Part shown: piece by piece, positions 16,401 through 34,773 of the stretch
How positions within the stretch are numbered: position 1 is the stretch's first letter
Layout of the letters: each line of letters begins with the position of its first letter
Origin: Botryllus schlosseri
Lineage: Eukaryota
Direction of reading: 5' to 3'
Assembly (NCBI GenBank): GCA_051294905.1
Contig: CM119384.1
Coordinates: forward strand, 7,750,001 to 7,814,000
DNA length: 64,000 nt
Made by a program: the position numbers and the translations under genes
Notes under the pieces: generated by a model
What the model was told of the DNA's origin: nothing
The model's database searches: none
The model's input: the letters and a program-made list of their open reading frames with translations, nothing else

Positions 16401-17009
16401 GCTTTTATTGTTATGATAGCATTTGGAAGGTTTACATGCGGCTAAATTAGTGTTTCATGATCGACAAACAGGTCTCAATTCGCCACTTTCACAATGGTAC
16501 TATTTAATATGCTCTTGAACTCCGCCAAGTCTGCTGTTCTATCTGTGCTGTCACACTTCCTGAGCTACCTGCTTTTTGTTGGTATATTTTCATTTTATTG
16601 AGGCATACAAGATCATAGAAAAAGCTTTATGCGCTTACATTTAAACGTTATGATACAGCGCTAGTTACCTGGCGGCGGGGTTTATCGCGAACTTATTAAC
16701 GCTGAATGCACAAAAAGTGCCTGGGTACTGCCGGAAGTAATTCTATGAGGGATTAATTTGAACAGCAGTGGAGTAGCAACAGATAATTCTACTCTTGCTG
16801 TGCTGTCTTGACAGTTTCTAGGAAATGAAATTTTATGCACTCTACCTACCTCATGATTGTTTGACAGTGGCTGCATCTTTTCCTATCTAATGAAAATTAG
16901 GCTGAAAATTTTTCTCGAATGATGGAATTGTTTTCAATATTGATCTCAAGCTTTGCAAGACTATTGACTATTTTATGTCATGTAATAACAACTTTCCTCT
17001 TGTTTACAG

Positions 17010-17182
17010 AACTGTGTCCTGCGAACTGTCCAGATGCATGTGATACAAACTACCAATGTACTTGTCACAAGCAGTGCATGGCCGGCTGCACGAGTCCCAA
17101 CAATGCCTCCGCCTGCTTAGCGTGTAAAGACAAGTATTACAACAATACCTGTCTCAGCGAATGTCCCAAAGGCAAATATCTG
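17010..17182 (+). CDS. INSR: INSR exon, furin-like Cys-rich domain
   Basis: tttacag|..[34 protein letters not shown]|gtaaga. Confidence 0.92.
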
Positions 17183-20100
17183 GTAAGATATGCCACTAGT
17201 GTCCGATTTAATCATAATTTTAACTTGACATTTATTGGAAAATTTATGAAGGTAATTCTCCATTTGCAAACGCTTTGGAGCCCTTGAAACACCTCAAAGT
17301 TTTCTCAAGTTTTTAAGTGGATAAAAAAGTGGGTTTCACGTGACATTAACTCAGAACTGAACAGTCAACACAATGACTTGGACTCGAGTCAAAACACTAT
17401 GACTTGGACTCGTTGGTGAATTGAAAATGACTCGCCTTGACTCGAGTCAAAACTATAAAAGTGTAATTGACTTGTGACTCAGAACCTTGTGACTTGGTTA
17501 CAACCCTGCATCCGTTCCATTGATTGCGTCGCCGATCTACATGGACTTTGACGAGCTGTTGAATGTTTACCAAACAGTTATTTGTGTGTCCCCTGCAGCT
17601 ACCTGCATTGCATGAACAGATGTTACGCGCTTGAAGTGGTGCGACCATGTTTTTTCACGGTCAATATTTGAAAACATTTAACGACAGTTGGACGACGAGT
17701 TTAACGCCGCAAACAAAAGTAAAACTTTCGACGTCGCCACTCTTTTCAACGGCGCTACTTGAAGCTCTAGGAGCGCACCATTGTTTTTTAACGGGCCCGC
17801 TCGTTTCGAGTGTGGTAACGTTTCTATTTACGCTGCTACTCAGGGCACTCGATCTCCTTTGATGGTATAACTAGGGGTGTAACGCTTCCTGATTGCGTTA
17901 TCAATGTTGTTTACCAATATACCGATGAACAAGTGTAATGTCGCGATGATGATCACGAATCGATTTGTCACAAATTAAGTACAAAGATTATTTGCTGTCT
18001 ATCAATACAGGCATAGTTATTGTTAACATTCGCGGATTTAGGTTAGCATCATAGTCGCGACGTATTTTAATTCAAGAATGCACTCTTTAATACTTTGTTG
18101 TGTGCGGTAGTACACCTTTCCGTGCTATTACTACAGACGCTGAGTGCTTCATTTTAGATTCTAAACAAGTTACGTGGGTTTTTGAACGGTGAACATGGCT
18201 GAAAGGTCCATTAGTCGGGATTAAAATCTGCCTTTCTGTGGTTTGACTGTTTGAAACGGGTGTTTTATCTCGGTGTTTTATCTCGGCCTTGTCTAAGCGA
18301 AACAGTGTACTGACAGATGGAGGGGGCGTGACTAATAGAGTGGGAGTCGCCAGGGATTGAATTTTCGTTTTTTGAGGTGTAGTTCCAAGCTTCTTATGTC
18401 ACGTTGTTGTTAATGTTGTTGTAATGACTCGTCTCGAGTCAAGATTTTCTGGTGACTCGACCTGACTCGAGTCGTTTTCTCAAAATACAGAAATGACTCG
18501 ACTCGAGTCAATCTGTGTATTGACTCGACTTGGACTAGAGTCATTACGCACGACTCGAACCAAGTCATATGACTCGAGAGACTCAGACGACCAAGACCGA
18601 CATTTCATTGCAATTTTGAATAATAATAAAGTAACCATCTATTAGGATTTTGTATTGGTACTGGTAATTGAGAATGCGACCAGAAACTGCTAAAAGTGAG
18701 GAAAATTAGTATATTAAAAATGCGAACCATTCGATATAACCAAACGGAGTTATAAAAAGTGGGTTTAACAAGACTTTAACTGAAAACTGAGCAGTCAACA
18801 CAATTAATTTGACCCAGACTCGAATAATAATACCATGACTCGGACTTGACCCTCTGCTCGCTGACTTAGACTCGGACTTGACTCGGTGTTGAAACTATAA
18901 AAGTGAGATTGACTAGTGACTCGGAGCCTTGTGGTGTGTATTTGAGATAGCTGAAGTCGGCAAGGGATCCTTACGCAAAGGTAGTCATCGTGTGTCGATA
19001 ACCTCATTCAGATCCACGGCTGGCTTTGCATCGAAAGCGAGGAATGTCAGAAACTGGACTGGAACTTCTACAACGGCACGTGCGTCGACATGTGCCCGAG
19101 CGGCTTTCAAGTCAACTTCACCGACTGTCGCCGAATATGCACCAAATGTCCCACGGAGGACTGCGGAGAAGGTGGGTTTCGAACATTCTAAAAGGAATCC
19201 TGAAAAATCCGGGATTAATATTTTCAAATGAACGATCTTGCAGACTGCTTCGGCGATTATACAATCGACAAGCTGGAGTCCCTGCATCAAGTGGACGGCT
19301 GTCGTTCCATAAGCGGGATGTTGACCATCTCCATCAATGGCGGATGTGAGTTGGTTTTATATCTGTGACTGGTTTGCGTTTTCAATGCACTCTGCCCCAC
19401 AAATATTAGTGAGGCGTCCGTGTACGTTGTAAAAGATCGAATTTTTCTCACAAAATCGATCTACATCTTATCCTTATGTAACGCTAGAAATAGAAGTTAT
19501 GCTTTCTCATACTTATTATCCTGTTATTCTGTTATATGCTGAGCTGAGGATTTTTGTGTTAATCCTAATACTATGGACTATACAGTTAAGTATCTGGTGT
19601 GTAATGTCGTAGTATGCCGTGTTTATAAGTTTACTCTGTGTTGCGTCAGTAAATTTTCGCTATGATCTCGGACTTAGAAATAAGGGTATTGCAGATGGCA
19701 CTATCCTGTACAAGACAGCCGTATTAATCGTGAATGGGTTATCTTTATGCTTGTGTAAACGTGTAAGCTTATGTTTCTACTGCTATCCGCCCAGGGAGAT
19801 TATATTTGCATACTACGGAATCGGTGTGAGACGGGTATTTGATTAGCGTTGCCAAACTTGAATTAGAATCTTTACAAGTGAATCCGAGCGTTACTTGAAG
19901 ATGATTTTCCGTCAGTCTCCGGTGCGTGAATGGGTCGATATACTGTGAATGGGTCTATTGTAGTTTCAGTTTCACTCTTTTGTGTCATGAAATCTCGTCA
20001 AACTACATGTTTGATGCAATTATTAGCAGTTTTGAAGAAGAATCATGTTCGAGAAAATGCTTCTTAGTTTAGAACTATTTGTGAACCAAACTGACCTATG

Positions 20101-23100
20101 TCCTAATGAGGCTCAAAAGTGGGTAGGTCTTGTTTTGAGGAACTAAAAATTGTGTTATCTACACCGTATGCACCACTTATTGTGTATTGATAGTGTGCCG
20201 GTTTGTGACATAGTGCAGTTTGGTTTCCTAACAATGCATAAAGTAGTAAGGATGTGTTGTCTCGCTATACCGTGTAATCCCTTGCAATAGTTTGTACGTT
20301 TCTTTCTAGCAAAACGTGATCTCTTTCTTTCAGCCGACGTGGTGGAAAGGTTGGATTCGGTGCTCAAGGATCTGGAGGTCGTGGGTTCCATTTCCGTTCG
20401 GCAGTCGTTTCCGTTGGTGACGATGTCGTTTCTGAAAAATTTGAAACGAATCACCGGCGACAACATGCAGGACGAGTGAGACACGTTTTCTTCAATTTCT
20501 AGTTATCTTTGGTAAATTAGGTCATCCCTTATTCAGTACTTGCTGGAGGTGATCTGTAGGGCAAGGGCTTTAATTTTCACAAATTGCACATTGCATCGAG
20601 AAAAAAAACTTGCAAAAAGTTGCATGAAAAGACGAAGAAAAGTTGCTATATAAGATTCCACCAAACGGCTTCAAACACCATACTACATAACTTCCGAGTA
20701 TTTAGGAAGCTGCCGGAAGTTGTAGAAAAAGTTGCAAAGACTTGCCCTAGTGATCAGTAATGAAGTACTTCAACTTTTTCAACGTGCTCAAGTAGAGAAA
20801 TTTACTAGTGACGAAAAGTCCGGGCCGCTTTGATGGTCTGAATTCAAAATCCGACCCCCCATGTCGCAGAGTGTTCAGCGTCTACTTCCTGGAGAATCAG
20901 AACCTGAAGGAGCTGTGGAACATGAGCGATCTGACGATAGAGCGCGGTAAAGCCTTCTTCCACTTCAACCCCAAGCTGTGCCGCAGCGTCATTTCGGGCT
21001 TGGAACGCCTGACCCCCGACAAGGAGGACGCGATGGACATCAGCAACGTCACAAACGGCGACAAGGGAACATGTGAGATTAAATTGTGTGGTCCTAGTTT
21101 TTTAATTTTTTTCGAATTTTTCCCCAAGTTTTTTCAGATTGCGTGCCGCTGATTTTTTCTTACTATACTGCGTCTTAACAGGCTTGTCCAACCGGGGTAT
21201 AAAATTACTTGCAGCTCATCGAAGATCATGTCCAGGCTCAAATGTACCCCCATGATTGCTACATCGAACCCTCGCGAACGTCACTCTTTTTCTTACATTG
21301 CGCATGTTGTTGCAGGCGACATTGTGCCCATCAAGCTCCTCGGAGTGGAGATCTACTCCACCAAGCCTTTTGCGATCGTGAGATGGGAAAATTATACTCC
21401 GAGAGACGACAGGACTTTGATCGGCTATCAAGTCTATTACCAAGAATCGTAAGCAATTTACAGTTAATTGATCAAAAACTGCATATTATGCTGGGGTGGT
21501 CAGTTATGAAGTAGGTCTACTTCTACTTTTTTGAGACACTCAAGTAGGTTTTGCAGACTTTCTCTACTTCTGAAGCGTTTTTTTGCACTCTTTAAATAGT
21601 AGAAATTAGTTTTGGAGCAAGTTTGCATTGCCTTTTAGAGTGAAATTATCGTGAACGCATGTTGCAACACTCCTGTGATTAAATTATGTTTGTCATTAGC
21701 GTGCACAGACGCATTTTGGGGGCGTGTAACTGAGGGTAAACACTGACCGCTTTGGCGTTATGCGTTAGAAATTTCAAATGGCGGTAATGTAAGTGTTGTC
21801 TTTTATGTCTCTTCCGTTAGCCTTATTCGAGTCCATAACTCCTTGTCTGTGCATAAATTAATTCGCTTTCCATCAATGCAAATCAGCGGGCGTGAACCCG
21901 GCGTGGTGCGGGCTTGCGGTAGGCGTGTCGGTGCACCTTTTCGCGGCCATATTGATTATTGTTGAGATGGAAGATATTCCGAGTAACACGGGAGTTGTGT
22001 CGATGGTAGGCTTTGTCGGGAATATTCTCACGGTTTGGGCGAAGATAGCGGCCTCGGAATTATGGGGAATTGAAACTTTTCGAGATTGCTGTGACGATAG
22101 CAAGTTTCGATCTTTTATTTGCAGGCCGGAGAAAGACGCGGAGATGTACGACGGAGTTGATGCTTGCCGATTGAACAGGTGAGGGGCGGCAGCCGTCTTG
22201 CGAATTGTGCTTTCATGTCTGCTACCAACCGCGTTGCACGCGGGAGCAATATGGTTTTCGGGATGCCTAATTTCCTTTTTTTTTGGCAACTGCATGTACC
22301 CCCAAGATTCAGGAAGTTAATGGCTAAAACGCTGCTTAACGACTAAAAATAGGTCATCATTTTACCCTAGTCTCTATTTAGGCTGTTTGATGCCTGAAAA
22401 GCTACGTGATGACGTTCACTGTCGAAGGACAGGCTAGCTGTGTAGTTTTTTGAGGCATTTCAACATTGCTGTTTCACAGACCCCCTAAAACTAGCTCGAT
22501 GATTCCAGTTTAAAAACCACCGGTCTACAAGATTTAGAATCGGAAATATGAAACCCCTTGTGGGTCTGCAGACTAGTTTTAAGGGATACAACAGCGAAGG
22601 CCAATGTTGAAATCTATAAAACTACCTATTTAATCTGCTTATGAGATCTGTCCTTACGCCAGAAACTCCCAGTAGCCTGACTGCAAAGCATTGTTAATTT
22701 GTAAACTAATAAAGAAAAAGGTTTTCACTTTCACTTTTACTAATCACAACCTCGTTCCCAAAAATAAAGATGAACTAAGGACTCGAGTCAAATGAAATCA
22801 CAAATCTCAGAAATAAAGGGCAATATAGTTTTATAAGACATCGCCTTACAAATAAGAACAGATCCTAGAAATAAGGTGTTTAAGGCAGCCATGCTTATGT
22901 CCCTTATTTTCCGCAGCTCACGATAGCCACACGGTCAATACGAACACTAATAATAATAGATAGTTTTTAGTCATCAGCTTCCCGAATTTCGTGGTTAGGA
23001 GGTCCGCACAACGATTTTTGGGTTAAGAAGCCCTGTGTTAAATATTCCTCGCTACTTGGTCTAGCTGGACAGTAATAGAGCTGCTCAAGACGTCTCGCAA

Positions 23101-26100
23101 GACGCCGCGTTACTTTTCTCTGGAGGATTTTGAGGCCGCAAACTTCACGGGCAACTTCACTCTGGACTTCGACGGCCCCGTCACCGATTCCAACTTGCTG
23201 CTGCCGGCGTTGAAGGCCTTCACGCAGTACGCTTACTACGTGCGGGCCTACACCACGTCTCGCGCGGGCGCCATATCGGCGATTGAATATTTCAAGACCA
23301 ATCCAGCGCGTAAGTTTCTCGAATGTTGGCGGAACTGTATTCTATATTCTGTCTGTATTCGGTATTTCGTAAGATTTCCTTCGTAATCCCGCCTGAGTGG
23401 AATTGTCGTGACAACGGGGCGATACATCCCCCGTATCTCAGAGACTGGATAGATTTTCGAAAATTGCACCTCGTAGTTATGTCATTTCAAATTTTCATTC
23501 ATATTCATTTTGGGAATTTTTAAACTTCGTTATGGGAATGAAAAAACTTGGTTTCGGAAATCTTCATTCTTCATTTTGGCATTTTGCTACTCCTAATTGT
23601 GATCGAGTAGAAATTTACATCGCGTTCCTTCGCAGGGCCGTCCAGTCCGATGTCTCTGAGAGTTACCGGCTCCAGCAATTCCACGATCGACTTGAAGTGG
23701 GATTTGCCAGCGACGCCCAACGGCAACATCACGCATTACATCATCGAGTGGCAGCGGCAGCACGAAGAGCTGGATAACGTACGGTCCTCGGACACCTGTC
23801 GGAGAGGTAATTTGCTGACAAGGACTGGTCACTAGTGAATCCTGCATTTTGAATTATCACTTTGGTGATTCAGCAGTCAACGGACCCAAATTTGTTATCC
23901 TAACACAACCCTGCCTCCTAACCTGAATTCATCAATACGTACATACCCAGTAGGGATGTCCTAAAATGATCTTTTTTCTCAAATTGTACTGGCTACTTGA
24001 TAAAATTGATAGGTTACTTAATTAAAGGCTGCACACTAAATTTGGTTCATTTCCAACCGATAGTTATTTATTTGGAGATAAATTTCAAAAATTTTTGTTC
24101 GCCCCATGAAATTGTTAGGTTGTCTATAGAAACAATGCTCAAATGCTCACCAAATTTGGCTCAATTCCAACCAGTGGAAGCGGAGTTATTGTAGTTGAAA
24201 AATTTGGATTTGAATAAAATGGTACGGTATTTACGGTGGCAAATTCTTCAGTTCGGCCCACCGTAAATACTATGATTTGAAATCTCAAATTTTGAACATC
24301 GACAACTCTGTTTCTACTGGTTCGAATCGAGTCAAACTCGTTGTGCATCGTTTGTTTCAGACAATGTAACAATTTCATGGGAAACCGGTAGAATTTGAAA
24401 AAAAAATTACATTCGTTTTTATTAAATAAATCCAAAACTTTTTGTCCTGTAGCAAGGCCACAATAGGTTGAACTTGAGCCAAAATTGCTGTGCAGCATTC
24501 TTTTAGGTAACCTAACCATTTTATCAAGTAGCCAGTACAGTTTGAAAGTAAAAGTCAACCCAAGATTGCTTGCATAATAATAGTTCTCGCTTATATTTAG
24601 TGCAACATTTATTTTTGAATTCATCACTTCTGTAATAATAATGTTTTATTTCACATTCATATTCAACGAGACAATCATTTTACAAATTGTTTAGACAATA
24701 TTGTTACTTCTTTTCCATATAATAATGGTGATTGTATTTCCAAGGCCAAATTCACTTGGTGCCGTATATCACAATTTCACGTTCCTAGCCTATTCGATGA
24801 AACATGAATTTGTGTGAAGTTATTAATACAATATCGGTGCATCTCTTACATAATAATAACAGTGTTACGTTTCTAATCCTGAATTGACCAAGTGTTGAAT
24901 TCACCTGTAACCCTAAGACTACACGATTGGGAATCTGTGTAACGTGGTACGTTAACTCTGCAGGTATCGCCCCCAGCGTAGAGATGGAGCATAACCCGGC
25001 CACCGTAAAGCCTACCGTCAGCACGCCGGCTTTGGACGACGAAAAACAGGTCGGTTGTTTAAAATCGCGTTGTGGTTTCTAGAATTTCGAAATAAGTACG
25101 GAAAAGATCGCGCAAATTTCCCTGTTAAATAATTGATTGGCGAACGAATGTTTTTGTCTAGTGTCCGAAGACTTGCGACTGCGAAGCCAAGGTGCCGCTC
25201 GAAAACAAGGTGGAGCACGCGAAGGAATCGACCATGTTTGAGAATTTTCTGCAGGACCACCTTTTCCGACCGTAAGTACAATCTAGTGGCTGGCCCACAT
25301 TGAAATTTACAACAACGTTATTTGTCCCTTTTTCTGACGATATTCTCAAAATCTGTTGTCGGCGTTGATATCCTGGTCCGTCTTTGATAATGAATCGTGT
25401 CATTTGATCCCTTCTGTATTCAGTGACCCGGAAACTATTGATTTTTATGACGACGGACCAATCATGGAAGGCAATATCGCTAGGTAAGTTATCCATCCAA
25501 GTTAACGTGCCTTTCAGGTATGCGAGATCTTCTTTCACTTAATCCGTGTTACACTGGACATTCAGAGGCTTGAAAACAAAAGAAATTTCAGACGCATAAT
25601 TCTAACGTTTCCGCCGAATGGAACGTTATGTATGTTGCTCAATAAAAAAGAAAAAACTCATGACTGAATAAAGACGAATTTTATAAAATAAAGAGAACGT
25701 AGTTTTAGAAGACATACATCACCATTCAGAATACGGACAAATCTTAAGAAATAAGGACGGTATGACATACCATGTGTATAAGACAAGTTCATTACATGAA
25801 ATGAATGAATTGTTTTTCAATTTCCTCATAAAACCGTCTCGTCATCGACACCGTGCTTTGTTACAGAAAAAAGAGGTCCTTGTACGAGCGACCTTCAAAT
25901 TATTCCATCGAGGCAAATTCCACAGGTGAGTCAAGTCTGGACTGCTAGAAAAATAGCTGGAATCGTATCATTATGATATCATGTTTTTAGATTCAGTTGC
26001 GACAGACGCACCTCCCGGTAATGAAAGTGACGCGTCGGTGCCCGTGGTGAAAGAGTACCCCAAATACCGCATGGTTGTATCGGGCCAGACCGCCACGTTG

Positions 26101-29100
26101 ACAGGGTAGGTTATATTCAAGTTATGTCTTGAAATTTTTCAAGCGGCGTGGCGAATTAAAACTTGAGACATTAGCCAGGGGTTATTGAATTCTCTATAGC
26201 GTGGACCACTAAATTGTTTTGGGTGGTTGCGTGGCAGTTATTGAACTTTGAGTAAAAATGTGTGGATTTATCTAAAAAATAAATAAGCCCTCATCACGAT
26301 TACATCAAGTCAAAACTGAGGACATATCTTATAAATAACAAGGTATGGTGTTATAATTTATAATTGTACTCTCAACATTGGCTTGGCACAGACCCCTTAA
26401 AACTAGTCTGTGAACCCCGGTTAAAGACCCCCCGCGGTATATGCTTCGGAAATTACCAGACCCATTGTGCCCATTAACTAATGAGACAATTCTTATGGAG
26501 GACTATTTTATGATTTCAGTTACTTTGGGGCATCAAACTGATTTTTTTTCGACGTAAATGTAGCCCTTGGGTTTTACATTAATTTTCAATTGAAGCGACT
26601 CTTGAATGTGCAGTTTCAATATTCAATTGAATAATATATTCATATTGAAATAAACATGACACTGACACTCGTCAGGGGTAATCGTCAACTAGTAGAGAAT
26701 CGGAAAGAACGTGGTATAATGTATATGGACGATTGTATCATCAAATATGATGTCACCGGTGTGAAATTTCAGGATTATGTTGATATGAATACATCGTTCA
26801 AATACGAAATTTTCATTGTCAAAAAGAGATAAATTTTGACCGAATGTCGCCATCGCATTTCAGGCTCCACCATTTCTCGGAGTACAGCATCCAGGTGTAC
26901 GCCTGCAATCACGCATCCGACCCCAAGTCTAGGACGGACCTGACATTTCCGATCAAGGAAATACCAAAAGGCCAAGAGAAAAATGGGAGCTACACGGCAT
27001 GCAGTATCGAAGCGATGGTGATGCGACGTACGGCGCCGGACAAAAGCAAAGATAAAATACCGGGTGACGTGAGAGTCTTGCGGAAGGAAAGGGGATACAA
27101 CGATGTGAGACGCCAAGCTTTTATACCCATTGAAATTTACGTCGTTGCTTCTACTTCTACTAGAGTAGCAACGCTGGCTACTTTAGGCACATCTGTATCT
27201 TGCTTTGTTGCGGAGAGTAAATGTGATAGGAAACCCTTTGGAAGAAGGGCTTTCTTAACTTGAGCTATCGCCCTATGTTTTTGTGATTATATTGCGTCAA
27301 TATGGCTCATGCCAGTATTTACGAGTGCCACTAGCGAGTCTGGCTGCAATGGACTTTTCCAAGACCCTGATATGGAATCGCTGAGTGTGACATCTTCCTC
27401 TGTTTCTAGGACAAAGTGGCGCTGGAGTGGGACATGCCTCCAGATCCGAACGCTTACATCAAAAACTTTCAAATCGAAATAAAAAGCAGCGACAAAGAGG
27501 TTTGTTCCTTGTTCGGCTTCGAGTCGAGTTTGATGACAGTATGGATGATTCAAGAAGTGTAAATATTTTCCTTTTTGCGCCTGCAAAGAAAATTTGCCGG
27601 TCACGCATAGCGTTAAAGATAAACAGGTAGATTTCCTACCGTACTTAATAAGTACTACTTATTTCATTGCACTTTTTGACAATGTTGCGGCTCGATCAGG
27701 ACTTCACGGAAATGTATTTTTCACTTTCGTGCCTAGCTTTGTGCTGTGTTTGAGATGCTGTGACACGACTGATCTTGTTGCTATATAACTATTAGTGGAA
27801 AGAGGTGTATACCCTCAGCACTCGAAAATATCTCTCTCGACTCGACTTGAATCATTACAACACATAACAAACACAACACATAACATAACACAACACATAG
27901 CACAACACAAAACGAAACACAACACATAACACCACACATAACACACAACACACACGCACGATTCGGATTTGGGTACTCAAGTCATTGTGCTCATTTGTCT
28001 CTATTTCAACGAAACGGTCGTTTTCAAAGTGTTGACTTTTCTATTTCCCTGGCATTATTGATACGCATCTCTCTGCACGGCATTGACTCCCAATTTTTTT
28101 CGTCGATACAGAGCAACGTTTTGGAGACGCTCTGCGTTCACGTCAACACGACGGCCGACAAGGACAAGAAAGTGTCGAAAGTGTTGGCGGCCCCCAAAGA
28201 CTTGCCGAGCGGCGAATACACAGGAACGATTACTCCCGTGTCGCTCGCAGGTCTGTAAATTTCTACCCAATTGCAAGTGGCTACTTAGACATTTGTCATT
28301 CTCGTGCTTTTGCGCCTGGTACTGCTACTGGTACTACATTGTTAACAATGTTTAAAATTGAAATCTCTTTTGCAGGAGACGGCCTCACATCGCATTCGTT
28401 CTATTTCGAAGTTACCGACCTCGAGTTGAGACGAAACAACTACCGTATCACCATCACTGTCGCGTCGATACTGGGAATAGTGATCATAGTGGCGGTGGTC
28501 TGCATATTGTTCTACGTCCGGTTCAGGTATGTACTTCAGTTGTTTTCTGCAGAAGTAGAGCTAACATAATATAGTAGCTGTCAAGGCTACTTAATTTGAG
28601 AATACTGTTTTCCTGAGGTCTCGAGAGGTCTGCAATCCAGATATTACTCAGACATGTGTAGTTTATTCGGAAATTAGCAAGGTAGCTTTGTAAAATGAAC
28701 GTTCTCTAGTAATGTGCGTGTGTGACTGGCGTACATACGCGGGCTATATGCGACATGGTATGGCATGATATACACACACGGTATTAACCTTCATTGGATC
28801 ACAATCGCGGATTGTTGCTGTTGCAGTACGCCATCACGAGCCGTGAAACAAATTATTACTTTGTGATTTCGCAGGCAAAAGAGAGAACACCCTGGCAACG
28901 ATTACCCCGGGGACAAAAACCCAGACTACTCCTTCTACAAGTACGAGCCAGACGAGTACGAGGTCCTGGTCGAAAACGTGAACGTCCTGGAGGAAATCGG
29001 ACACGGAGCTTTCGGCAAGGTAACCTGCGACGTTGTTTCGTCGTAGCCGGGTCTAGTGTGCTTCCTTGTCGACAGTGAGAGACGTTCCCCATGAGCATAG

Positions 29101-32100
29101 CCGACGGCTGCTCCCCATGGAACTTTAACCGGTGGCCTGTGTAAATGGTGAAAATCGCGAGGGTACTTTCTGTAGATTTTGACATGTTCACATGAAATGT
29201 TGGTTGGCGATGGTCATGCAGCACACTGCTCGACGTGAATAATGAAGACACTACGCCCATGTCTGGCGTAGTTACACGTCTAGAAAATTTTCACCTTTTA
29301 GAATTTGAATTCGCAAAAACTTTGAACTTGAACTGATTTCTGAATTAGAAAGAAACACGACCAAAATAGAGTTTAGTTTGTATCAAATCATATAATTATC
29401 GATTTGTCTAATTCTGCTCTCCAGTCTTGTGCAGTGGCTGAAAATAACATGAATTCCAGGTATTTGTCGGAATCGCTAAAGGTGTCGTGAAAGGAGAGAC
29501 AAAAACGAGGGTGGCCATCAAGCAGCTGCACGACGGCGCCAGCATGAATATGAGGTGGGTGTAGCGGCCCAGCGATATCACCGCTGTTTCGCGCCAGCTA
29601 ATTTCTCCCCTTTCTCCTGCCAGATGCGACTTTTTGAAAGAAGCCGACATGATGAAGGCTTTTGAGGTCAGTCACGTCGTCCGCTTGCTGGGTGTCGTGT
29701 CCCAGGTGCCCAACCCGATGGTGCTTATGGAGTTTATGGCTAACGGGGACTTGAAGACTTATCTTCGGTTGCAACGCGAGGACGTCGAGGTAATTTTGAG
29801 TCGCTTTTGCGATTTCTGTTGCGTGGGGGTGGGTTTTGGGGGTTGAGAACCACTAGTCTAGAACGGTGCTCTTCAACCGGGGTTGTCGTACACCCTAGGG
29901 TGTACCAGAATTTGCAAAGGGTGTACCACTCGGATGGGGTGTACAGGGGTGTACCAGATCGGAATTACAATGAGCCGATGGCTAGCTATCACAAAGGCAG
30001 GTTTATGGGTCAGTACAGGTTGACGCACAGGTTAATGAGCAATATGGTACGATGTTATCTCAAGTGTAATACTTTACACCGCTTGATTGTGATGTCATAA
30101 GCAAATATTTCTTCTATTCATTTAGCCGTCGGCAATAGACCAATGGTTCCGTTTGGTGTTGGATAGTATGCAGTTAACAAACATGTGTTCCGCTAGTCAT
30201 TTGTCTTTTAGTGATTTTTTGAGGAAACCGCCGCGGTACCTCGGACTTTTTGAATCTGTACTTCCTACCCGACGTTAATATATACCGCAATGCAGCGAAG
30301 TGACGTAGCCAGCCAGGGTCGAAACAGTTTCCATGTTGAAATCGAAACCCTTTTGTTTTAAAATGCCAATGGTATGTCCAATATTTCGCCATACATTTGC
30401 AATTCAGTATTTTGTTATTAGTGATGTAAATTAGCGATAATAGACTGTGTATTGCGGCATACGATCTAAGGTTACTGACATCTCTTGCAGCCCATGTGCT
30501 ATTATCGACTGTGTGTGGTGTGGGAGAGGCTTGATACGCAGTAGGCTGGTGCGCCCGCTATCAGCGCTGATCTCAATTACCGCTTCTGCAGCAGTAGCTT
30601 TACCTACTCTCTCCCCAATACTGTTACATTTAGGTTGATTATCGTTCGTAATGTCATGCTGTTTTTGCTCTGACATGAAATAAATTCCAATTTGCGTGGC
30701 GGGGGGCCTAACTGGCTGCGAATAGACTCTGTGACCAAATACTATTTTATTCAAATCCAAATTTTTTGACGGCAATAACTCTGCTTCTACTGGTCTGAAT
30801 TGAACCAAATTTGAGGAACATCGTTTTTATAGACAAATTAATACTTTCATGGGGTGAACAGAAAAATTTCAAATTTTTCGTTATTTATCTTTATATAATA
30901 AATAGAAACTTTCTTCTCCCGTAGCAAGGCGGCTACTGGTTGGAATTGAACCAAATTTGGTGTGTAGGCTTAAGTTAGTTAACCTAACAATTTTATCAAG
31001 TAGCCAGTATGATTTCAGAAAAAAAGTCATTTTTGAAGACCTCTAATGAGCAGGGGTGTACGAGTTTTGAGCAAACGTTAAAAGGGTGTACCATGTCGAA
31101 AAAGGTTGAAGAGCACTGGTCTAGAAATTGTTACGTGCCAAATATGATAAATTTAATTATAATCGAAAGAACATGAAGTTGCCATGGCTCGATATCGACT
31201 ACCAAATTAGTTCCGGCATTAAAAGACAGCCACACCCGTAACAATTTGAGAAGCGGGATGAAGCACCTTTATCTCTCCGAGCCCAAAACCGCGGTTTTCA
31301 AGTCAAATTTCCACCGTAAACCTTTTCGCCCGTCTGTAATCGCAGGGCAAGCCTGTCGTGGTGGACCCGCTGAGCTTACAAACGAAACTGCAAATGGCCA
31401 CGGAAGTGGCGGACGGCATGCTGTACCTGTCCGATCGTAAGTTCATCCACCGCGACTTGGCCGCGAGAAACTGTCTGGTCAACGACGCGGGGACGGTGAA
31501 AATCGGAGACTTTGGGCTGGCGCGCGAGGTCTACGAATGTGACTACTACAGGAAGGAAAGCAGAGGTGAGACCGGTTTGTTGCATGCTTCCAGAGTATTT
31601 GAAGAGCTTCTCGGAAGTACAGAACTTCAATAAACAGTTGAATAGTATATTTATAGTGAAATAAAGCCGAATTATCTACTAGTTGCTGACGATTACCCCT
31701 AACGAGTTCATCCGAAATTATTCTTACGAATATGTTATTCAATTTTCGAGTATTCATCATCAGTGCTTGAGGAGAAATAGAAAAGAGTCCACAACTTGAA
31801 TCGCTAACTCTAGTTCTGCCCCCAAAAATTGTAGACTGTCAGGTGAAAGTAGTCAAACACCATAACAATTCGGCAAAATCAGCTTTAATGCTCTGGAAAG
31901 GTAGGACTTGGTCAATGATCAACTCTGCGTGCTGCTTCCGATGTTTTTCGTTGAATTTTTTATTTATTTGAAATTGGCGCAAAGGGAATTATAGTTTTTG
32001 AATTCCGAACGTGGGGAACAACAGTTCTTGAAGAACCTGGGGCGTAATCGCTGTCGGCCGATTACCTAATTTTCGAAAAATCTTGCAGGTTTTCTTCCGA

Positions 32101-34773
32101 TTCGCTGGATGGCGCCGGAGTCGCTGAAAGACGGGGTGTTCAACTCGAGGTCCGACGTCTGGTCGTACGGCATTGTCGTCTGGGAGATTGCGACCTTGGC
32201 GCAACAGCCTTACCAAGGCAAGCAGCACGACGAGGTCACGAGATTCGTCATCGACGGAGGGTACATGGAGAAGCCAAAAGATTGCCCGTCTAAATTGTGA
32301 GTCGCGTCGATACTCATCGTTACAGATAGACCCCGTCCCATGATATTAATTTCGAACTTGAATCCACGCGTGTTGCGTTGGCCCAGGCGAAATCAAGCAC
32401 CTGAGTGTTTTGGTTATGCTCAGCCCTAATTTCGCGTCGATTTATTGATCCGCATTTAAATAACCTCTGCAGATACAACATGATCAATTTCCATGTGCAT
32501 GAATAAACACAGCCCAAAGCTCCTATTTGTTCGATACAAACAGACTTGTAAAAACTGGTGTATTCATAACTAGAACTCCTCACTTTTTTCAATCCGCAAC
32601 AACTACAACTTTAATTACTGACTTTTAAAAATCTGCATCTAGAACTAGAACTACTCGCTTTCCGCAACTTCAACTAAAACTTTAAATACTCACTTTTCAA
32701 AATCTGCAAATGCTTTTACAACTTTTAATACACATTTTTAAAAACTACAACTAGAACTTTGAATACTCACTTTCAAAATCCGCAACTACAACTAGAACCA
32801 GAACTACTCGCTTTTCAAAATTCGCAACTGGAACTAGAACTACTCGAAAAACCGTTAGTTAGTTTACTGTCAAGTCTGTATATAAAGTATAGCTTAGCCC
32901 TGACCCTATCGCCGTCCCATAGCTACGGGCCTATGAATAAATGATCGACGATAGCGATTCAGCGTCCCAAATTAGCAAGACTATAACATCATTAAGAAAA
33001 CTTTCATAAAAACGTGATACACAGTGTAACCTGTACACGTACAGATACAACATAATCAGTTCAGTTTGTGTGATTAAACGCAGTCTACAACCGAGAGCCC
33101 CCGTCAACAAAACATGCAGTCGCGATTTCAATTGTGCCGTTCTATCCGCAGGTACGACCTCATGAAGATATGCTGGGAGTACAATCCGAGAATGAGGCCG
33201 GAATTTCGGGAGCTGGTGAACTTGCTGCTGCGTGAAGGTGAAGTCAACAACCAATTCCTGGAAATCAGCTACTATGGAAACGAAGATCAATTGTACGTAG
33301 CACTGCGCTTTTCTTGTTCTGATTGAGTTAAGTTCTCTAGTAGATTTTGTCTCCTTGTACTGCTTACTTGAGCGGTTACGGTTATAAACTGTTTCCGCCT
33401 CGACTGTTCTTGAAGCTTGGTTTTTGTAGAGTAGAGAGTAGTATTTGCATATATTCAGAGCAGTGGCTCCAAAACTTATCAAGCCTGGGATATCCTATCC
33501 CCCCTTAAAAGCTAGAGGTCATCAGTAACAAAGCGCTTGTAAGTTTACATACTACTCAAGTAGATTTAGTCCACTTGTTTTGCTGACTGAAGTCGTTTTT
33601 GCTTCAACAGTCAACAGCTCGTGATGCTGAAATACTAATTTTGCATACTGAGCGATGATAGCAAAATGAAAGTCATTATATTATTCGCTCTAATTACTTT
33701 TCTCTGAGTTAAGTTGATGCAAGATAGCGTAGTGGAGCGTCCGGCTTCTTGATCGGTAGGTCATGTGTTTGAAATCCCTGACTGGGTCAGACCAAAGATA
33801 TGATTGGTTTCCGTGGGTACACCGCTTAGCGCTCTGCATTGTCAGGATAGCATGGAGGGGCGGTGCAAGAGTTATAAGCCTTACAAGGCTATATCTGCAC
33901 CTTCCTCGTCCAACGGCACATGGTATGCATATGTACAGATCGTGTGTGTGTAGTGTGTGTGTATCATGAGCCAGTGTATATGCCGCAAAAACATCAAGGA
34001 CAAAAATTTATAACGTCCTATTCCTGCGATATAGACAAAATTTCGATGACCTTGAACTAAAAACACCAAGATCGTCAATGGCTTTTTTTGGATCCCAGAA
34101 AACTAGTCCGCAGAATACTCAGTTAAAATCAATTTTCATTTGCAGTCCGATCCGCAGCCACCCGCCGATGCAGACGGGACATACCTACTCGGAACACATG
34201 GACGCATCATACGCGTGCGACGACCCAGGGACATCCCCAATACCGTCCCAGCCCAACGGCATCGGCATCAACGGCAACGACTATTACCGAAACCAAAACT
34301 CAAATCACCAGCCCGGCACGCCAGAGACCCGGCCCCTGATCCCGCTCGAACGGGAGAGCGCCGAGGCCCCGTGCAACGACGAGAGGTCCATGAACACAAT
34401 GTCGACCACTGCACCCCGGTCTCCACTACCGGGGCTGTCCCGGTCTTCGAGAGAGAATGAATACGGCAGCGATAGCTCCTATGAAAATGAGTCTGATGAG
34501 AGCTTGTCAAGAGGCGGGTATGTCAGCGCTAGAGACTCTGGGACTTTTGTGAGAAGCGAACGGGATGCTGCCCCGGTCAGGCACAAGAATCGTGCCGGGC
34601 GGCGGAAATCCAAGTCTTACGAGTACGATCTCGAGTCTGGGCTAGGGGAGAACATGTGCGACAACTCTACGTCGCACAGTAGCGCGTCCACGCCCACCGA
34701 GTCCCACGGATTGCTGCCATTCGACAGGCGGGACACGGGTCATGTGCTGCACACGGCGTCGACCACGTGCTGA
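17010..34773 (+). CDS. INSR: Insulin/IGF-1 receptor family tyrosine kinase (5'-partial; 25 exons, about 1345 aa in window)
   Basis: Exons 17010-17182, 19012-19171, 19244-19345, 20334-20475, 20870-21072, 21316-21448, 22125-22178, 23065-23309, 23636-23806, 24964-25049, 25162-25271, 25424-25483, 25867-25925, 25991-26105, 26864-27104, 27410-27499, 28112-28250, 28376-28526, 28875-29019, 29460-29554, 29624-29789, 31346-31565, 32089-32296, 33152-33292, 34146-34773. All GT-AG with consistent phases (4037 nt plus 1 split base). Domains: Cys-rich, L2, FnIII x3, alphaCT ([10 protein letters not shown]), RKKR/SL cleavage site, TM, NPDY, kinase ([27 protein letters not shown]). Confidence 0.96.
17330..17508. 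mobile_element. Partial copy (right end) of the GACTCG-array MITE
   Basis: Ends GGTTACAACCCTG; GACTTGGACTCG repeats as at 62320-62475. Confidence 0.7.
18420..18930. mobile_element. Degenerate near-full copy of the GACTCG-array MITE
   Basis: GACTCGACTCGAGTCA arrays at both ends with an AT-rich middle, similar to 61997-62475. Confidence 0.7.
19012..19171 (+). CDS. INSR: INSR exon, Cys-rich domain
   Basis: ttcag|[32 protein letters not shown]|gtgggt. Confidence 0.92.
19244..19345 (+). CDS. INSR: INSR exon, start of L2
   Basis: [33 protein letters not shown]; AG/GT flanks. Confidence 0.92.
20334..20475 (+). CDS. INSR: INSR exon, L2
   Basis: [30 protein letters not shown]; AG/GT flanks. Confidence 0.92.
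20870..21072 (+). CDS. INSR: INSR exon, L2 end
   Basis: [25 protein letters not shown]. Confidence 0.93.
21316..21448 (+). CDS. INSR: INSR exon, FnIII-1
   Basis: [24 protein letters not shown]. Confidence 0.93.
22125..22178 (+). CDS. INSR: INSR exon, FnIII-1 (alpha-alpha Cys)
   Basis: [12 protein letters not shown], compare DACGSNSW. Confidence 0.92.
23065..23309 (+). CDS. INSR: INSR exon, FnIII-1
   Basis: [27 protein letters not shown]. Confidence 0.92.
23636..23806 (+). CDS. INSR: INSR exon, FnIII-2a
   Basis: [33 protein letters not shown]. Confidence 0.93.
23950..24560. mobile_element. Foldback/MITE with long imperfect inverted arms
   Basis: GTACTGGCTACTTGATAAAAT (about 23986) inverts to ATTTTATCAAGTAGCCAGTAC (about 24518-24538). 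Related arms at about 30720-31040 and 55965-56170. Confidence 0.7.
24964..25049 (+). CDS. INSR: INSR exon, insert domain
   Basis: ctgcag|[29 protein letters not shown]|gtcggt; phases 1/0 fit neighbours. Confidence 0.8.
25162..25271 (+). CDS. INSR: INSR exon, Cys cluster and alphaCT
   Basis: [24 protein letters not shown]|gtaagt. Confidence 0.93.
25424..25483 (+). CDS. INSR: INSR 60-nt symmetric exon (candidate cassette, exon-11 position)
   Basis: cttctgtattcag|[21 protein letters not shown]|gtaagt; phase 2/2; completes R-K-K-R with the next exon. Confidence 0.8.
25867..25925 (+). CDS. INSR: INSR exon, alpha/beta cleavage site
   Basis: ttacag|[19 protein letters not shown]|gtgagt. Confidence 0.9.
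25991..26105 (+). CDS. INSR: INSR exon, beta N-terminus
   Basis: [30 protein letters not shown]|gtaggt; alternative in-frame acceptor ending 25996. Confidence 0.85.
26864..27104 (+). CDS. INSR: INSR exon, FnIII-2b
   Basis: [29 protein letters not shown]. Confidence 0.92.
27410..27499 (+). CDS. INSR: INSR exon, FnIII-3
   Basis: [24 protein letters not shown]. Confidence 0.9.
27858..27958 (+). repeat. Imperfect (AACAC/AACAT)n microsatellite
   Basis: aacacataacaaacacaacacataacataacacaacac... Confidence 0.85.
28112..28250 (+). CDS. INSR: INSR exon, FnIII-3
   Basis: [25 protein letters not shown]. Confidence 0.9.
28376..28526 (+). CDS. INSR: INSR exon, transmembrane helix
   Basis: [27 protein letters not shown]. 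Confidence 0.93.
28875..29019 (+). CDS. INSR: INSR exon, juxtamembrane NPxY and Gly loop
   Basis: [25 protein letters not shown]. Confidence 0.94.
29460..29554 (+). CDS. INSR: INSR exon, kinase N-lobe
   Basis: [21 protein letters not shown]. Confidence 0.94.
29624..29789 (+). CDS. INSR: INSR exon, kinase
   Basis: [33 protein letters not shown]. Confidence 0.95.
29864..31118. mobile_element. Non-autonomous hAT (Charlie-like) element in INSR intron
   Basis: TIRs CGGTGCTCTTCAACC / GGTTGAAGAGCACTG; perfect 8-bp TSD GTCTAGAA; reiterated subterminal GGGTGTAC. Confidence 0.85.
31346..31565 (+). CDS. INSR: INSR exon, catalytic and activation loops
   Basis: [37 protein letters not shown]. Confidence 0.96.
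32089..32296 (+). CDS. INSR: INSR exon, kinase C-lobe
   Basis: [39 protein letters not shown]. Confidence 0.96.
32541..32878. mobile_element. hAT-type MITE with internal tandem CTAGAACTACTC/CCGCAAC units
   Basis: TIRs CAGACTTG / CAAGTCTG; TSD GATACAAA vs TATATAAA (6/8). Related inverted, interrupted copy at about 9531-10068. Confidence 0.65.
33152..33292 (+). CDS. INSR: INSR exon, kinase end
   Basis: [25 protein letters not shown]. Confidence 0.94.
33720..34010 (+). mobile_element. tRNA-derived SINE (central domain resembles MetaSINE as recalled)
   Basis: A-box-like TAGCGTAGTGG, B-box-like GTTTGAAATCC, then GGGTCAGACCAAAGA..ATTGGT..CCGCTTAGCGC..GCATT; TG-repeat tail. Confidence 0.55.
34146..34773 (+). 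CDS. INSR: INSR terminal exon, long C-tail ending ASTTC*
   Basis: ttttcatttgcag acceptor, phase 2 (alternative in-phase acceptor ending 34157); open to TGA at 34771-34773. Confidence 0.85.

Follow-up and report, generated by a model that had tools for sequence, protein, structure and literature searches.

A short acidic exon ahead of the cleavage site of an ascidian insulin-receptor-family gene is probably constitutive

Is the 60-nt exon that separates the alphaCT exon from the cleavage-site exon in an insulin-receptor-family gene of Botryllus schlosseri a regulated cassette, in the manner of exon 11 of the mammalian INSR gene, or an ordinary part of the messenger RNA? The first-pass annotation of this locus had proposed a convergent cassette that supplies the P4 Arg of the furin site and could switch proreceptor processing. 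We approached the question through a window of 64,000 nucleotides (G000:C14:7750001-7814000 of the 495.5-Mb B. schlosseri genome), RNA data that map to it, and related genes in other ascidians, a hemichordate and fish.

The host is an insulin-receptor-family receptor tyrosine kinase gene. Its part from the Cys-rich region to the C-terminal tail lies on the plus strand at 16901..34770, as delimited by Pfam and tblastn, and the L1 exons are found upstream of the window, at a distance of about 20 kb (L1/CR match at G000:C14:7729690-7730061). The predicted protein has the head characteristic of the family, in which an L domain, a Cys-rich (furin-like) region and another L domain follow each other, the L1 part being encoded upstream of the window. 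This head is followed by FnIII domains and an insert domain that carries the alphaCT motif and then the basic cleavage site RKKR/SL, and further on by a transmembrane segment and a tyrosine kinase whose activation loop, YECDYYRK, has the Y-x-x-x-Y-Y pattern. Pfam matches to single window exons comprised Furin-like (E 4.5e-14), Recep_L_domain, fn3 (23611-23832) and PK_Tyr_Ser-Thr (E 6e-25). Queried by tblastn with the Styela clava protein XP_039251871 (P0160), the window shows 17 exon matches in colinear order, at 43-80% identity. All of the nearest named relatives come from tunicates, namely receptors of Styela clava and then of Ciona savignyi, Phallusia and Clavelina; by sequence comparison, the Styela clava 'insulin receptor-like' protein is the closest of them, which places the gene in a stolidobranch ascidian other than S. 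clava. When the exons from 23636 to 28527 were joined at the RNA-derived junctions, one open frame resulted, and nine of nine introns were bordered by GT..AG. An L2-exon query against a large representative protein library (1.84 billion) retrieved only fragments and distant receptors, and no B. schlosseri protein.

In the spliced frame, the segment from alphaCT to RKKR/SL, which starts with CPKT, can be aligned with its counterparts in the Styela, fish and hemichordate receptors. The exons involved are all on the plus strand. The alphaCT exon (25162..25271, RNA junctions 25049>25162 and 25271>25424) ends in phase 2 with the CC of a Pro codon, and its 3' border reads TTCCGACC|gtaagt at 25271/25272. 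It shares 51% identity with residues 813-847 of Styela P0160, a segment that ends EFENYLQDHIFF, and contains the F-E-[ND]-[FY]-L motif common to fish and hemichordate receptors. Sequence and RNA junctions define a following intron of 152 nt (25272..25423, GTAAGT...ATTCAG). The mini-exon then occupies 25424..25483 in phase 2/2, spliced into contigs of RNA runs X1, X2 and X8, with borders attcag|TGACCC at 25423/25424 and ATCGCTAG|gtaagt at 25483/25484. Its product is an acidic 19-residue linker with a net charge of -6 and no basic residue, to which is added the AG of the P4 Arg codon of R-K-K-R; these two bases (25482..25483) open a split AGA codon whose third base is 25867. Beyond an intron of 383 nt (25484..25866, GTAAGT...TTACAG), likewise defined by sequence and RNA junctions, the 59-nt cleavage exon (25867..25925, junctions 25483>25867 and 25925>25991) has the 5' border gttacag|AAAAAAGAGGTCC at 25866/25867 and contributes the A of Arg, KKR and the start of the beta chain. 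The next exon (25991..26105) encodes the beta-chain part of the insert domain and the start of the C-terminal half of FnIII-2.

With the mini-exon included, the mature junction reads IA-R-K-K-R/SL, its Arg codon split AG|A. Skipping in silico keeps the frame but turns the joined codon CC|A into Pro, which gives F-R-P-K-K-R/SL (HLFRPKKR/SLYE) with Pro at P4. The first-pass annotation had described a 60-nt phase 2/2 exon at this position and both of these reading frames; sequence and RNA contigs agree exactly with the former, and the joined exons confirm the latter. Between FnIII-2 and the membrane, the spliced frame contains no R-x-[KR]-R other than RKKR, and the skipped form has none. Placed directly before the N-terminus of the beta chain, RKKR has at the motif level the form of a furin/proprotein convertase substrate and would be expected to be cleaved by furin-type enzymes, yielding the disulfide-linked alpha and beta chains of the family. 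A human receptor that has lost its basic site remains an uncleaved, low-affinity proreceptor, and for this reason a skipped form of the ascidian transcript would matter.

Parts of the window are covered by 20 B. schlosseri RNA runs, four of which were mapped on 23500-28600: X1 (from a 2015 study), X2 (2022), X8 (2021) and X23, which consists of raw reads. Junction 25271>25424 is present in the main contigs of X1, X2 and X8, hence in three independent studies, and junction 25483>25867 in the main transcript contigs of X1 and X2. The mini-exon is real and forms part of the dominant mRNA in these three studies. Thus, both inclusion junctions named in the first-pass annotation were recovered, while its skipping junction, 25271>25867, appeared neither in the contigs of X1, X2 and X8 nor in X23. 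This negative result speaks mainly for abundant forms, as minor variants are lost from assembled contigs and X23 has nearly zero depth at the mini-exon (0-1 reads over it in a 6% sample); skipping at a low level or in particular tissues may have escaped it. A 5.8-billion transcript-derived fragment set, queried with the 81-residue spliced peptide across the mini-exon, returned no candidate.

One contig of X8 behaves differently from the main contigs of X1 and X2. Both of its upstream junctions, including 25271>25424, are spliced, after which it extends 28 nt into the next intron (25484-25511) and ends there; the transcript at this place is therefore not uniform in every sample. Reading through the donor of intron 25484..25866 produces AGG TAA (Arg, stop), so that intron retention or early termination after the mini-exon would give an mRNA ending in GNIAR-stop and encoding a secreted, alpha-only ectodomain that could act as a ligand trap. 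The in-frame stop immediately past the donor and the depth of the X8 contig (6.8, compared with 8.7 and 14.8 in neighbouring contigs) are consistent with such a product. However, X1 and X2 splice this intron normally, and neither use of a poly(A) signal nor a pile-up of read ends was seen there. The read-through is probably pre-mRNA: low-depth contigs occur in other introns as well (X1, at 25635-25790 and 26153-26529), as do unspliced reads (X23, entering an intron at 25068), a pattern typical of pre-mRNA. A dedicated alpha-only form is very improbable.

Two further features of the RNA coverage concern introns elsewhere in the mapped interval. In the 112-nt intron before the alphaCT exon (25049-25162), X23 contains four spliced reads and at least six that run into the intron, and the latter carry a SNP (G>T near 25083). 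At intronic 23842-24700 and 26578-26748, the depth of RNA contigs is in the thousands, compared with 10-50 in exons, and there are many loose ends; these stretches probably belong to repeats that are highly expressed or occur in many copies.

A similar exon is found in other ascidians. The Styela clava orthologue XP_039251871 (locus L001) has the same architecture, with a 60-nt phase 2/2 exon at L001:57054-57113 (APGLPEDFVTVQEFNSSST). Its alphaCT exon ends TTCTTCCC|gtaagt, its mini-exon ends ACAAG|gtatgt, and the next exon starts ATCCAAAAGA, which together produce R(AG|A)-S-K-R/SL. The two species agree in exon length, phases and the split Arg, whereas the peptides share only about 1-2 of 19 residues, and the Styela peptide is less acidic (-3 versus -6 in B. 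schlosseri) and has no Tyr. In the IGF1R-like gene of Clavelina lepadiformis (XP_076808813, locus L003), a 51-nt phase 2/2 exon (SYSDTAENEYYEESSLYG) directly follows alphaCT and encodes an acidic, Tyr-rich peptide. Here, in contrast, the whole of RKKR is encoded by the next exon, five codons past the junction, and the mini-exon gives nothing to the cleavage site. The Ciona savignyi model H2YE96 places an acidic, Tyr-rich ITDVDLPYDDFLDEEDL after alphaCT and before RSKR. Judging from these gene structures, present in Styela, Clavelina and one Ciona savignyi model, the mini-exon is not a novelty of one species and occurs across ascidian orders.

The Ciona savignyi Ensembl models (P0153, P0155, P0276 and P0277; UniRef H2YE92-H2YE99) disagree exactly between alphaCT and FnIII-2. 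Some include the mini-exon and others do not, the small RSKR exon is likewise present in some only, and one model translates intron sequence. This region is evidently hard for automatic annotation. We considered the models without the mini-exon as evidence of alternative splicing and rejected them as such, since they are automatic and several are visibly mis-spliced.

If the exon were a regulated cassette, its skipping in some tissues or stages would shorten the alpha tail, place Pro at P4, impair furin cleavage and alter signalling. Several of its properties suit such a role, and other observations speak against it. It is frame-preserving and lies between the alphaCT and cleavage-site exons, as an exon-11-type cassette does; with 60 nt in phase 2/2, its omission would keep the frame and leave no R-x-[KR]-R. 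However, origin at a phase-2 intron accounts for both the 2/2 symmetry and a length that is a multiple of three, so that symmetry alone is no sign of alternative splicing. In position it matches exon 11 of mammals, the skipping of which alters the receptor's ligand selectivity (PMC2577065, PMC12796670), and the split-Arg design is kept in Styela as well. The peptide evolves fast (about 1-2 of 19 residues shared with Styela), whereas regulated cassettes are typically conserved. While the X8 contigs break around the mini-exon, the skipping junction is absent from all four runs, contigs and near-zero-depth raw reads alike. The Ciona savignyi Ensembl model H2YE92 joins alphaCT straight to the RSKR exon, but it is an automatic model, and NCBI/RefSeq holds one isoform each for Styela XP_039251871 and the Clavelina gene, with the mini-exon included and no skip isoform.

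The splice sites point in the same direction. They follow the consensus: with a perfect AG|GTAAGT at the mini-exon and GTAAGT at the exon upstream, these two donors are the best among the nine introns. A good pyrimidine tract is present at the acceptor, and the flanking introns are short (152 and 383 nt). A short-word blastn comparison of the flanking introns between the window and Styela found only chance 9-10-mers and no shared intronic elements. The idea of an alternatively spliced cassette is thus not borne out by the four runs, the single orthologue isoforms, the strong donor or the flanking introns, and we regard regulated skipping as unlikely. Since the furin site of Clavelina is independent of the mini-exon, a processing switch cannot be its ancestral role. 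A narrower version, in which tissue- or life-cycle-specific skipping in styelids would remove the acidic tail together with the P4 Arg and thereby switch between cleaved and uncleaved receptor, independently of IR-A/IR-B, appears quite unlikely. Skipping, if shown, would make this the first member of the insulin-receptor family in which proreceptor processing is under the control of splicing.

A second insulin-receptor-family gene offers a comparison within the same genome. It is located at G000:C14:7618764-7668317 on the minus strand, head-to-head with the host gene and with about 60 kb between the 5' ends. The same head-to-head pair exists in Styela clava, about 30 kb apart (loci L001 and L002), and the adjacent Styela paralogue has RefSeq variants X1 and X2 that differ by 1 aa. 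In the B. schlosseri paralogue and its Styela counterpart XP_039251870, the phase-2 intron after alphaCT interrupts the same codon as in the host gene, and, as there, an acidic spacer precedes RKRR/RKKR; in the paralogues, however, spacer and furin site share one exon. The B. schlosseri paralogue accommodates spacer and RKRR in a single 69-nt phase 2/2 exon at about L012:5301-5233 (L012 = 7622000-7631999).

Outside the ascidians, no mini-exon exists in the hemichordate Ptychodera (locus L004) or in a fish insrb (locus L011), where alphaCT is followed at this place by a single phase-2 intron. A phase-2 intron in this same place is shared by the Ptychodera and fish genes, both Styela genes and the Clavelina gene, and, by position and phase, the intron at 25272..25423 corresponds to this ancestral intron after alphaCT. 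A variable spacer, 10-30 residues long, separates alphaCT from the basic site in invertebrate receptors generally.

How, then, does the ascidian exon relate to mammalian exon 11? The latter is likewise a small, frame-neutral exon between the alphaCT and cleavage exons that lengthens the alpha-chain tail, and we infer that it sits in the same ancestral intron, which is in phase 2 in the examined fish, hemichordate and ascidian genes. The two exons nevertheless differ in most other respects. Mammalian exon 11 is 36 nt long and encodes 12 residues without net charge, whereas the ascidian exon has 60 nt and encodes 19-20 strongly acidic residues, with no sequence similarity between them. Furthermore, exon 11 is demonstrably alternative and leaves R-K-R-R untouched, while only inclusion has been seen for the ascidian exon, which forms part of the P4 Arg codon. 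Homology of the two was considered and rejected, as fish insrb and Ptychodera have no mini-exon and the ascidian peptide is unrelated to the 12-residue insert. Because the examined hemichordate and fish genes lack a counterpart, the ascidian exon arose independently of the mammalian one, and on this point, the convergence of position, the first-pass annotation can be upheld.

Its statement that exon 11 is mammal-specific, by contrast, is dated. An insert homologous to exon 11 has recently been reported in turtles, and inserts unrelated to it in a few fishes and sharks (PMC12796670). In addition, exon 11 of INSRR (IRR), located at this position too, is constitutively included and described as an independent acquisition (PMC2577065). 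It resembles the ascidian exon in position and in the constitutive inclusion that is probable for the latter, although it belongs to a vertebrate paralogue and is unrelated in sequence. In behaviour, the ascidian mini-exon is closest to this IRR case, constitutive inclusion being its best-supported behaviour.

On present evidence, the mini-exon is probably an ordinary constitutive exon and not an exon-11-like switch, and we have considerable, though not full, confidence that it is constitutively included in this ascidian insulin-receptor-family gene. The exon borders, the inclusion in mRNA, the motif, the conservation and the intron phases were read directly from the data, whereas the constitutive status was deduced. 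The exon encodes the acidic tail of the alpha subunit, presumably flexible and disordered, which connects the ligand-binding alphaCT helix with the site for proprotein convertases. The terminal AG of the exon, together with the first base of the next exon, specifies the P4 Arg, such that the mature mRNA encodes a canonical furin site. Across ascidians, the alpha-chain tail is always acidic (net -3 to -8), has no basic residue and is often Tyr-rich.

The simplest account of how this arrangement came about, reconstructed from comparison of the genes, would comprise four steps. A phase-2 intron after alphaCT would have been present in ancestral deuterostome receptors, and the mini-exon would have appeared in it before the split of the ascidian orders. 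It could then have fused with the cleavage exon in the tandem paralogue (B), and in the styelid gene A the junction could have moved onto the P4 Arg codon.

Ascidians form the vertebrates' sister group. Within the insulin-receptor family, exons appear to have arisen repeatedly in the intron after alphaCT, with cases in mammalian and turtle INSR, in INSRR and in ascidians, where the mini-exon would be a further exon at this intron, independent and much older. The ascidian exon is old and is conserved in length and phase in styelids, where it is tied to the cleavage site through the split Arg. It therefore allows a natural comparison of the ways in which the alpha-chain tail beside the ligand-binding helix tolerates or uses inserts. 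Our literature search on insulin-receptor splicing in ascidians found nothing specific, and none of the papers retrieved discusses the mini-exon, although it is already contained in public gene models of related species.

A minor observation concerns the Tyr residues of the acidic tail. Tyr occurs in an acidic context as DFYDD in the B. schlosseri mini-exon (window 25424-25483), DYDDIY in the Styela paralogue (L002:35916-36002), EYYEE in Clavelina (L003:24364-24414) and PYDDF in Ciona savignyi. These residues fit the classical pattern of tyrosine sulfation and might be considered putative sulfation sites in the alpha-chain tail.
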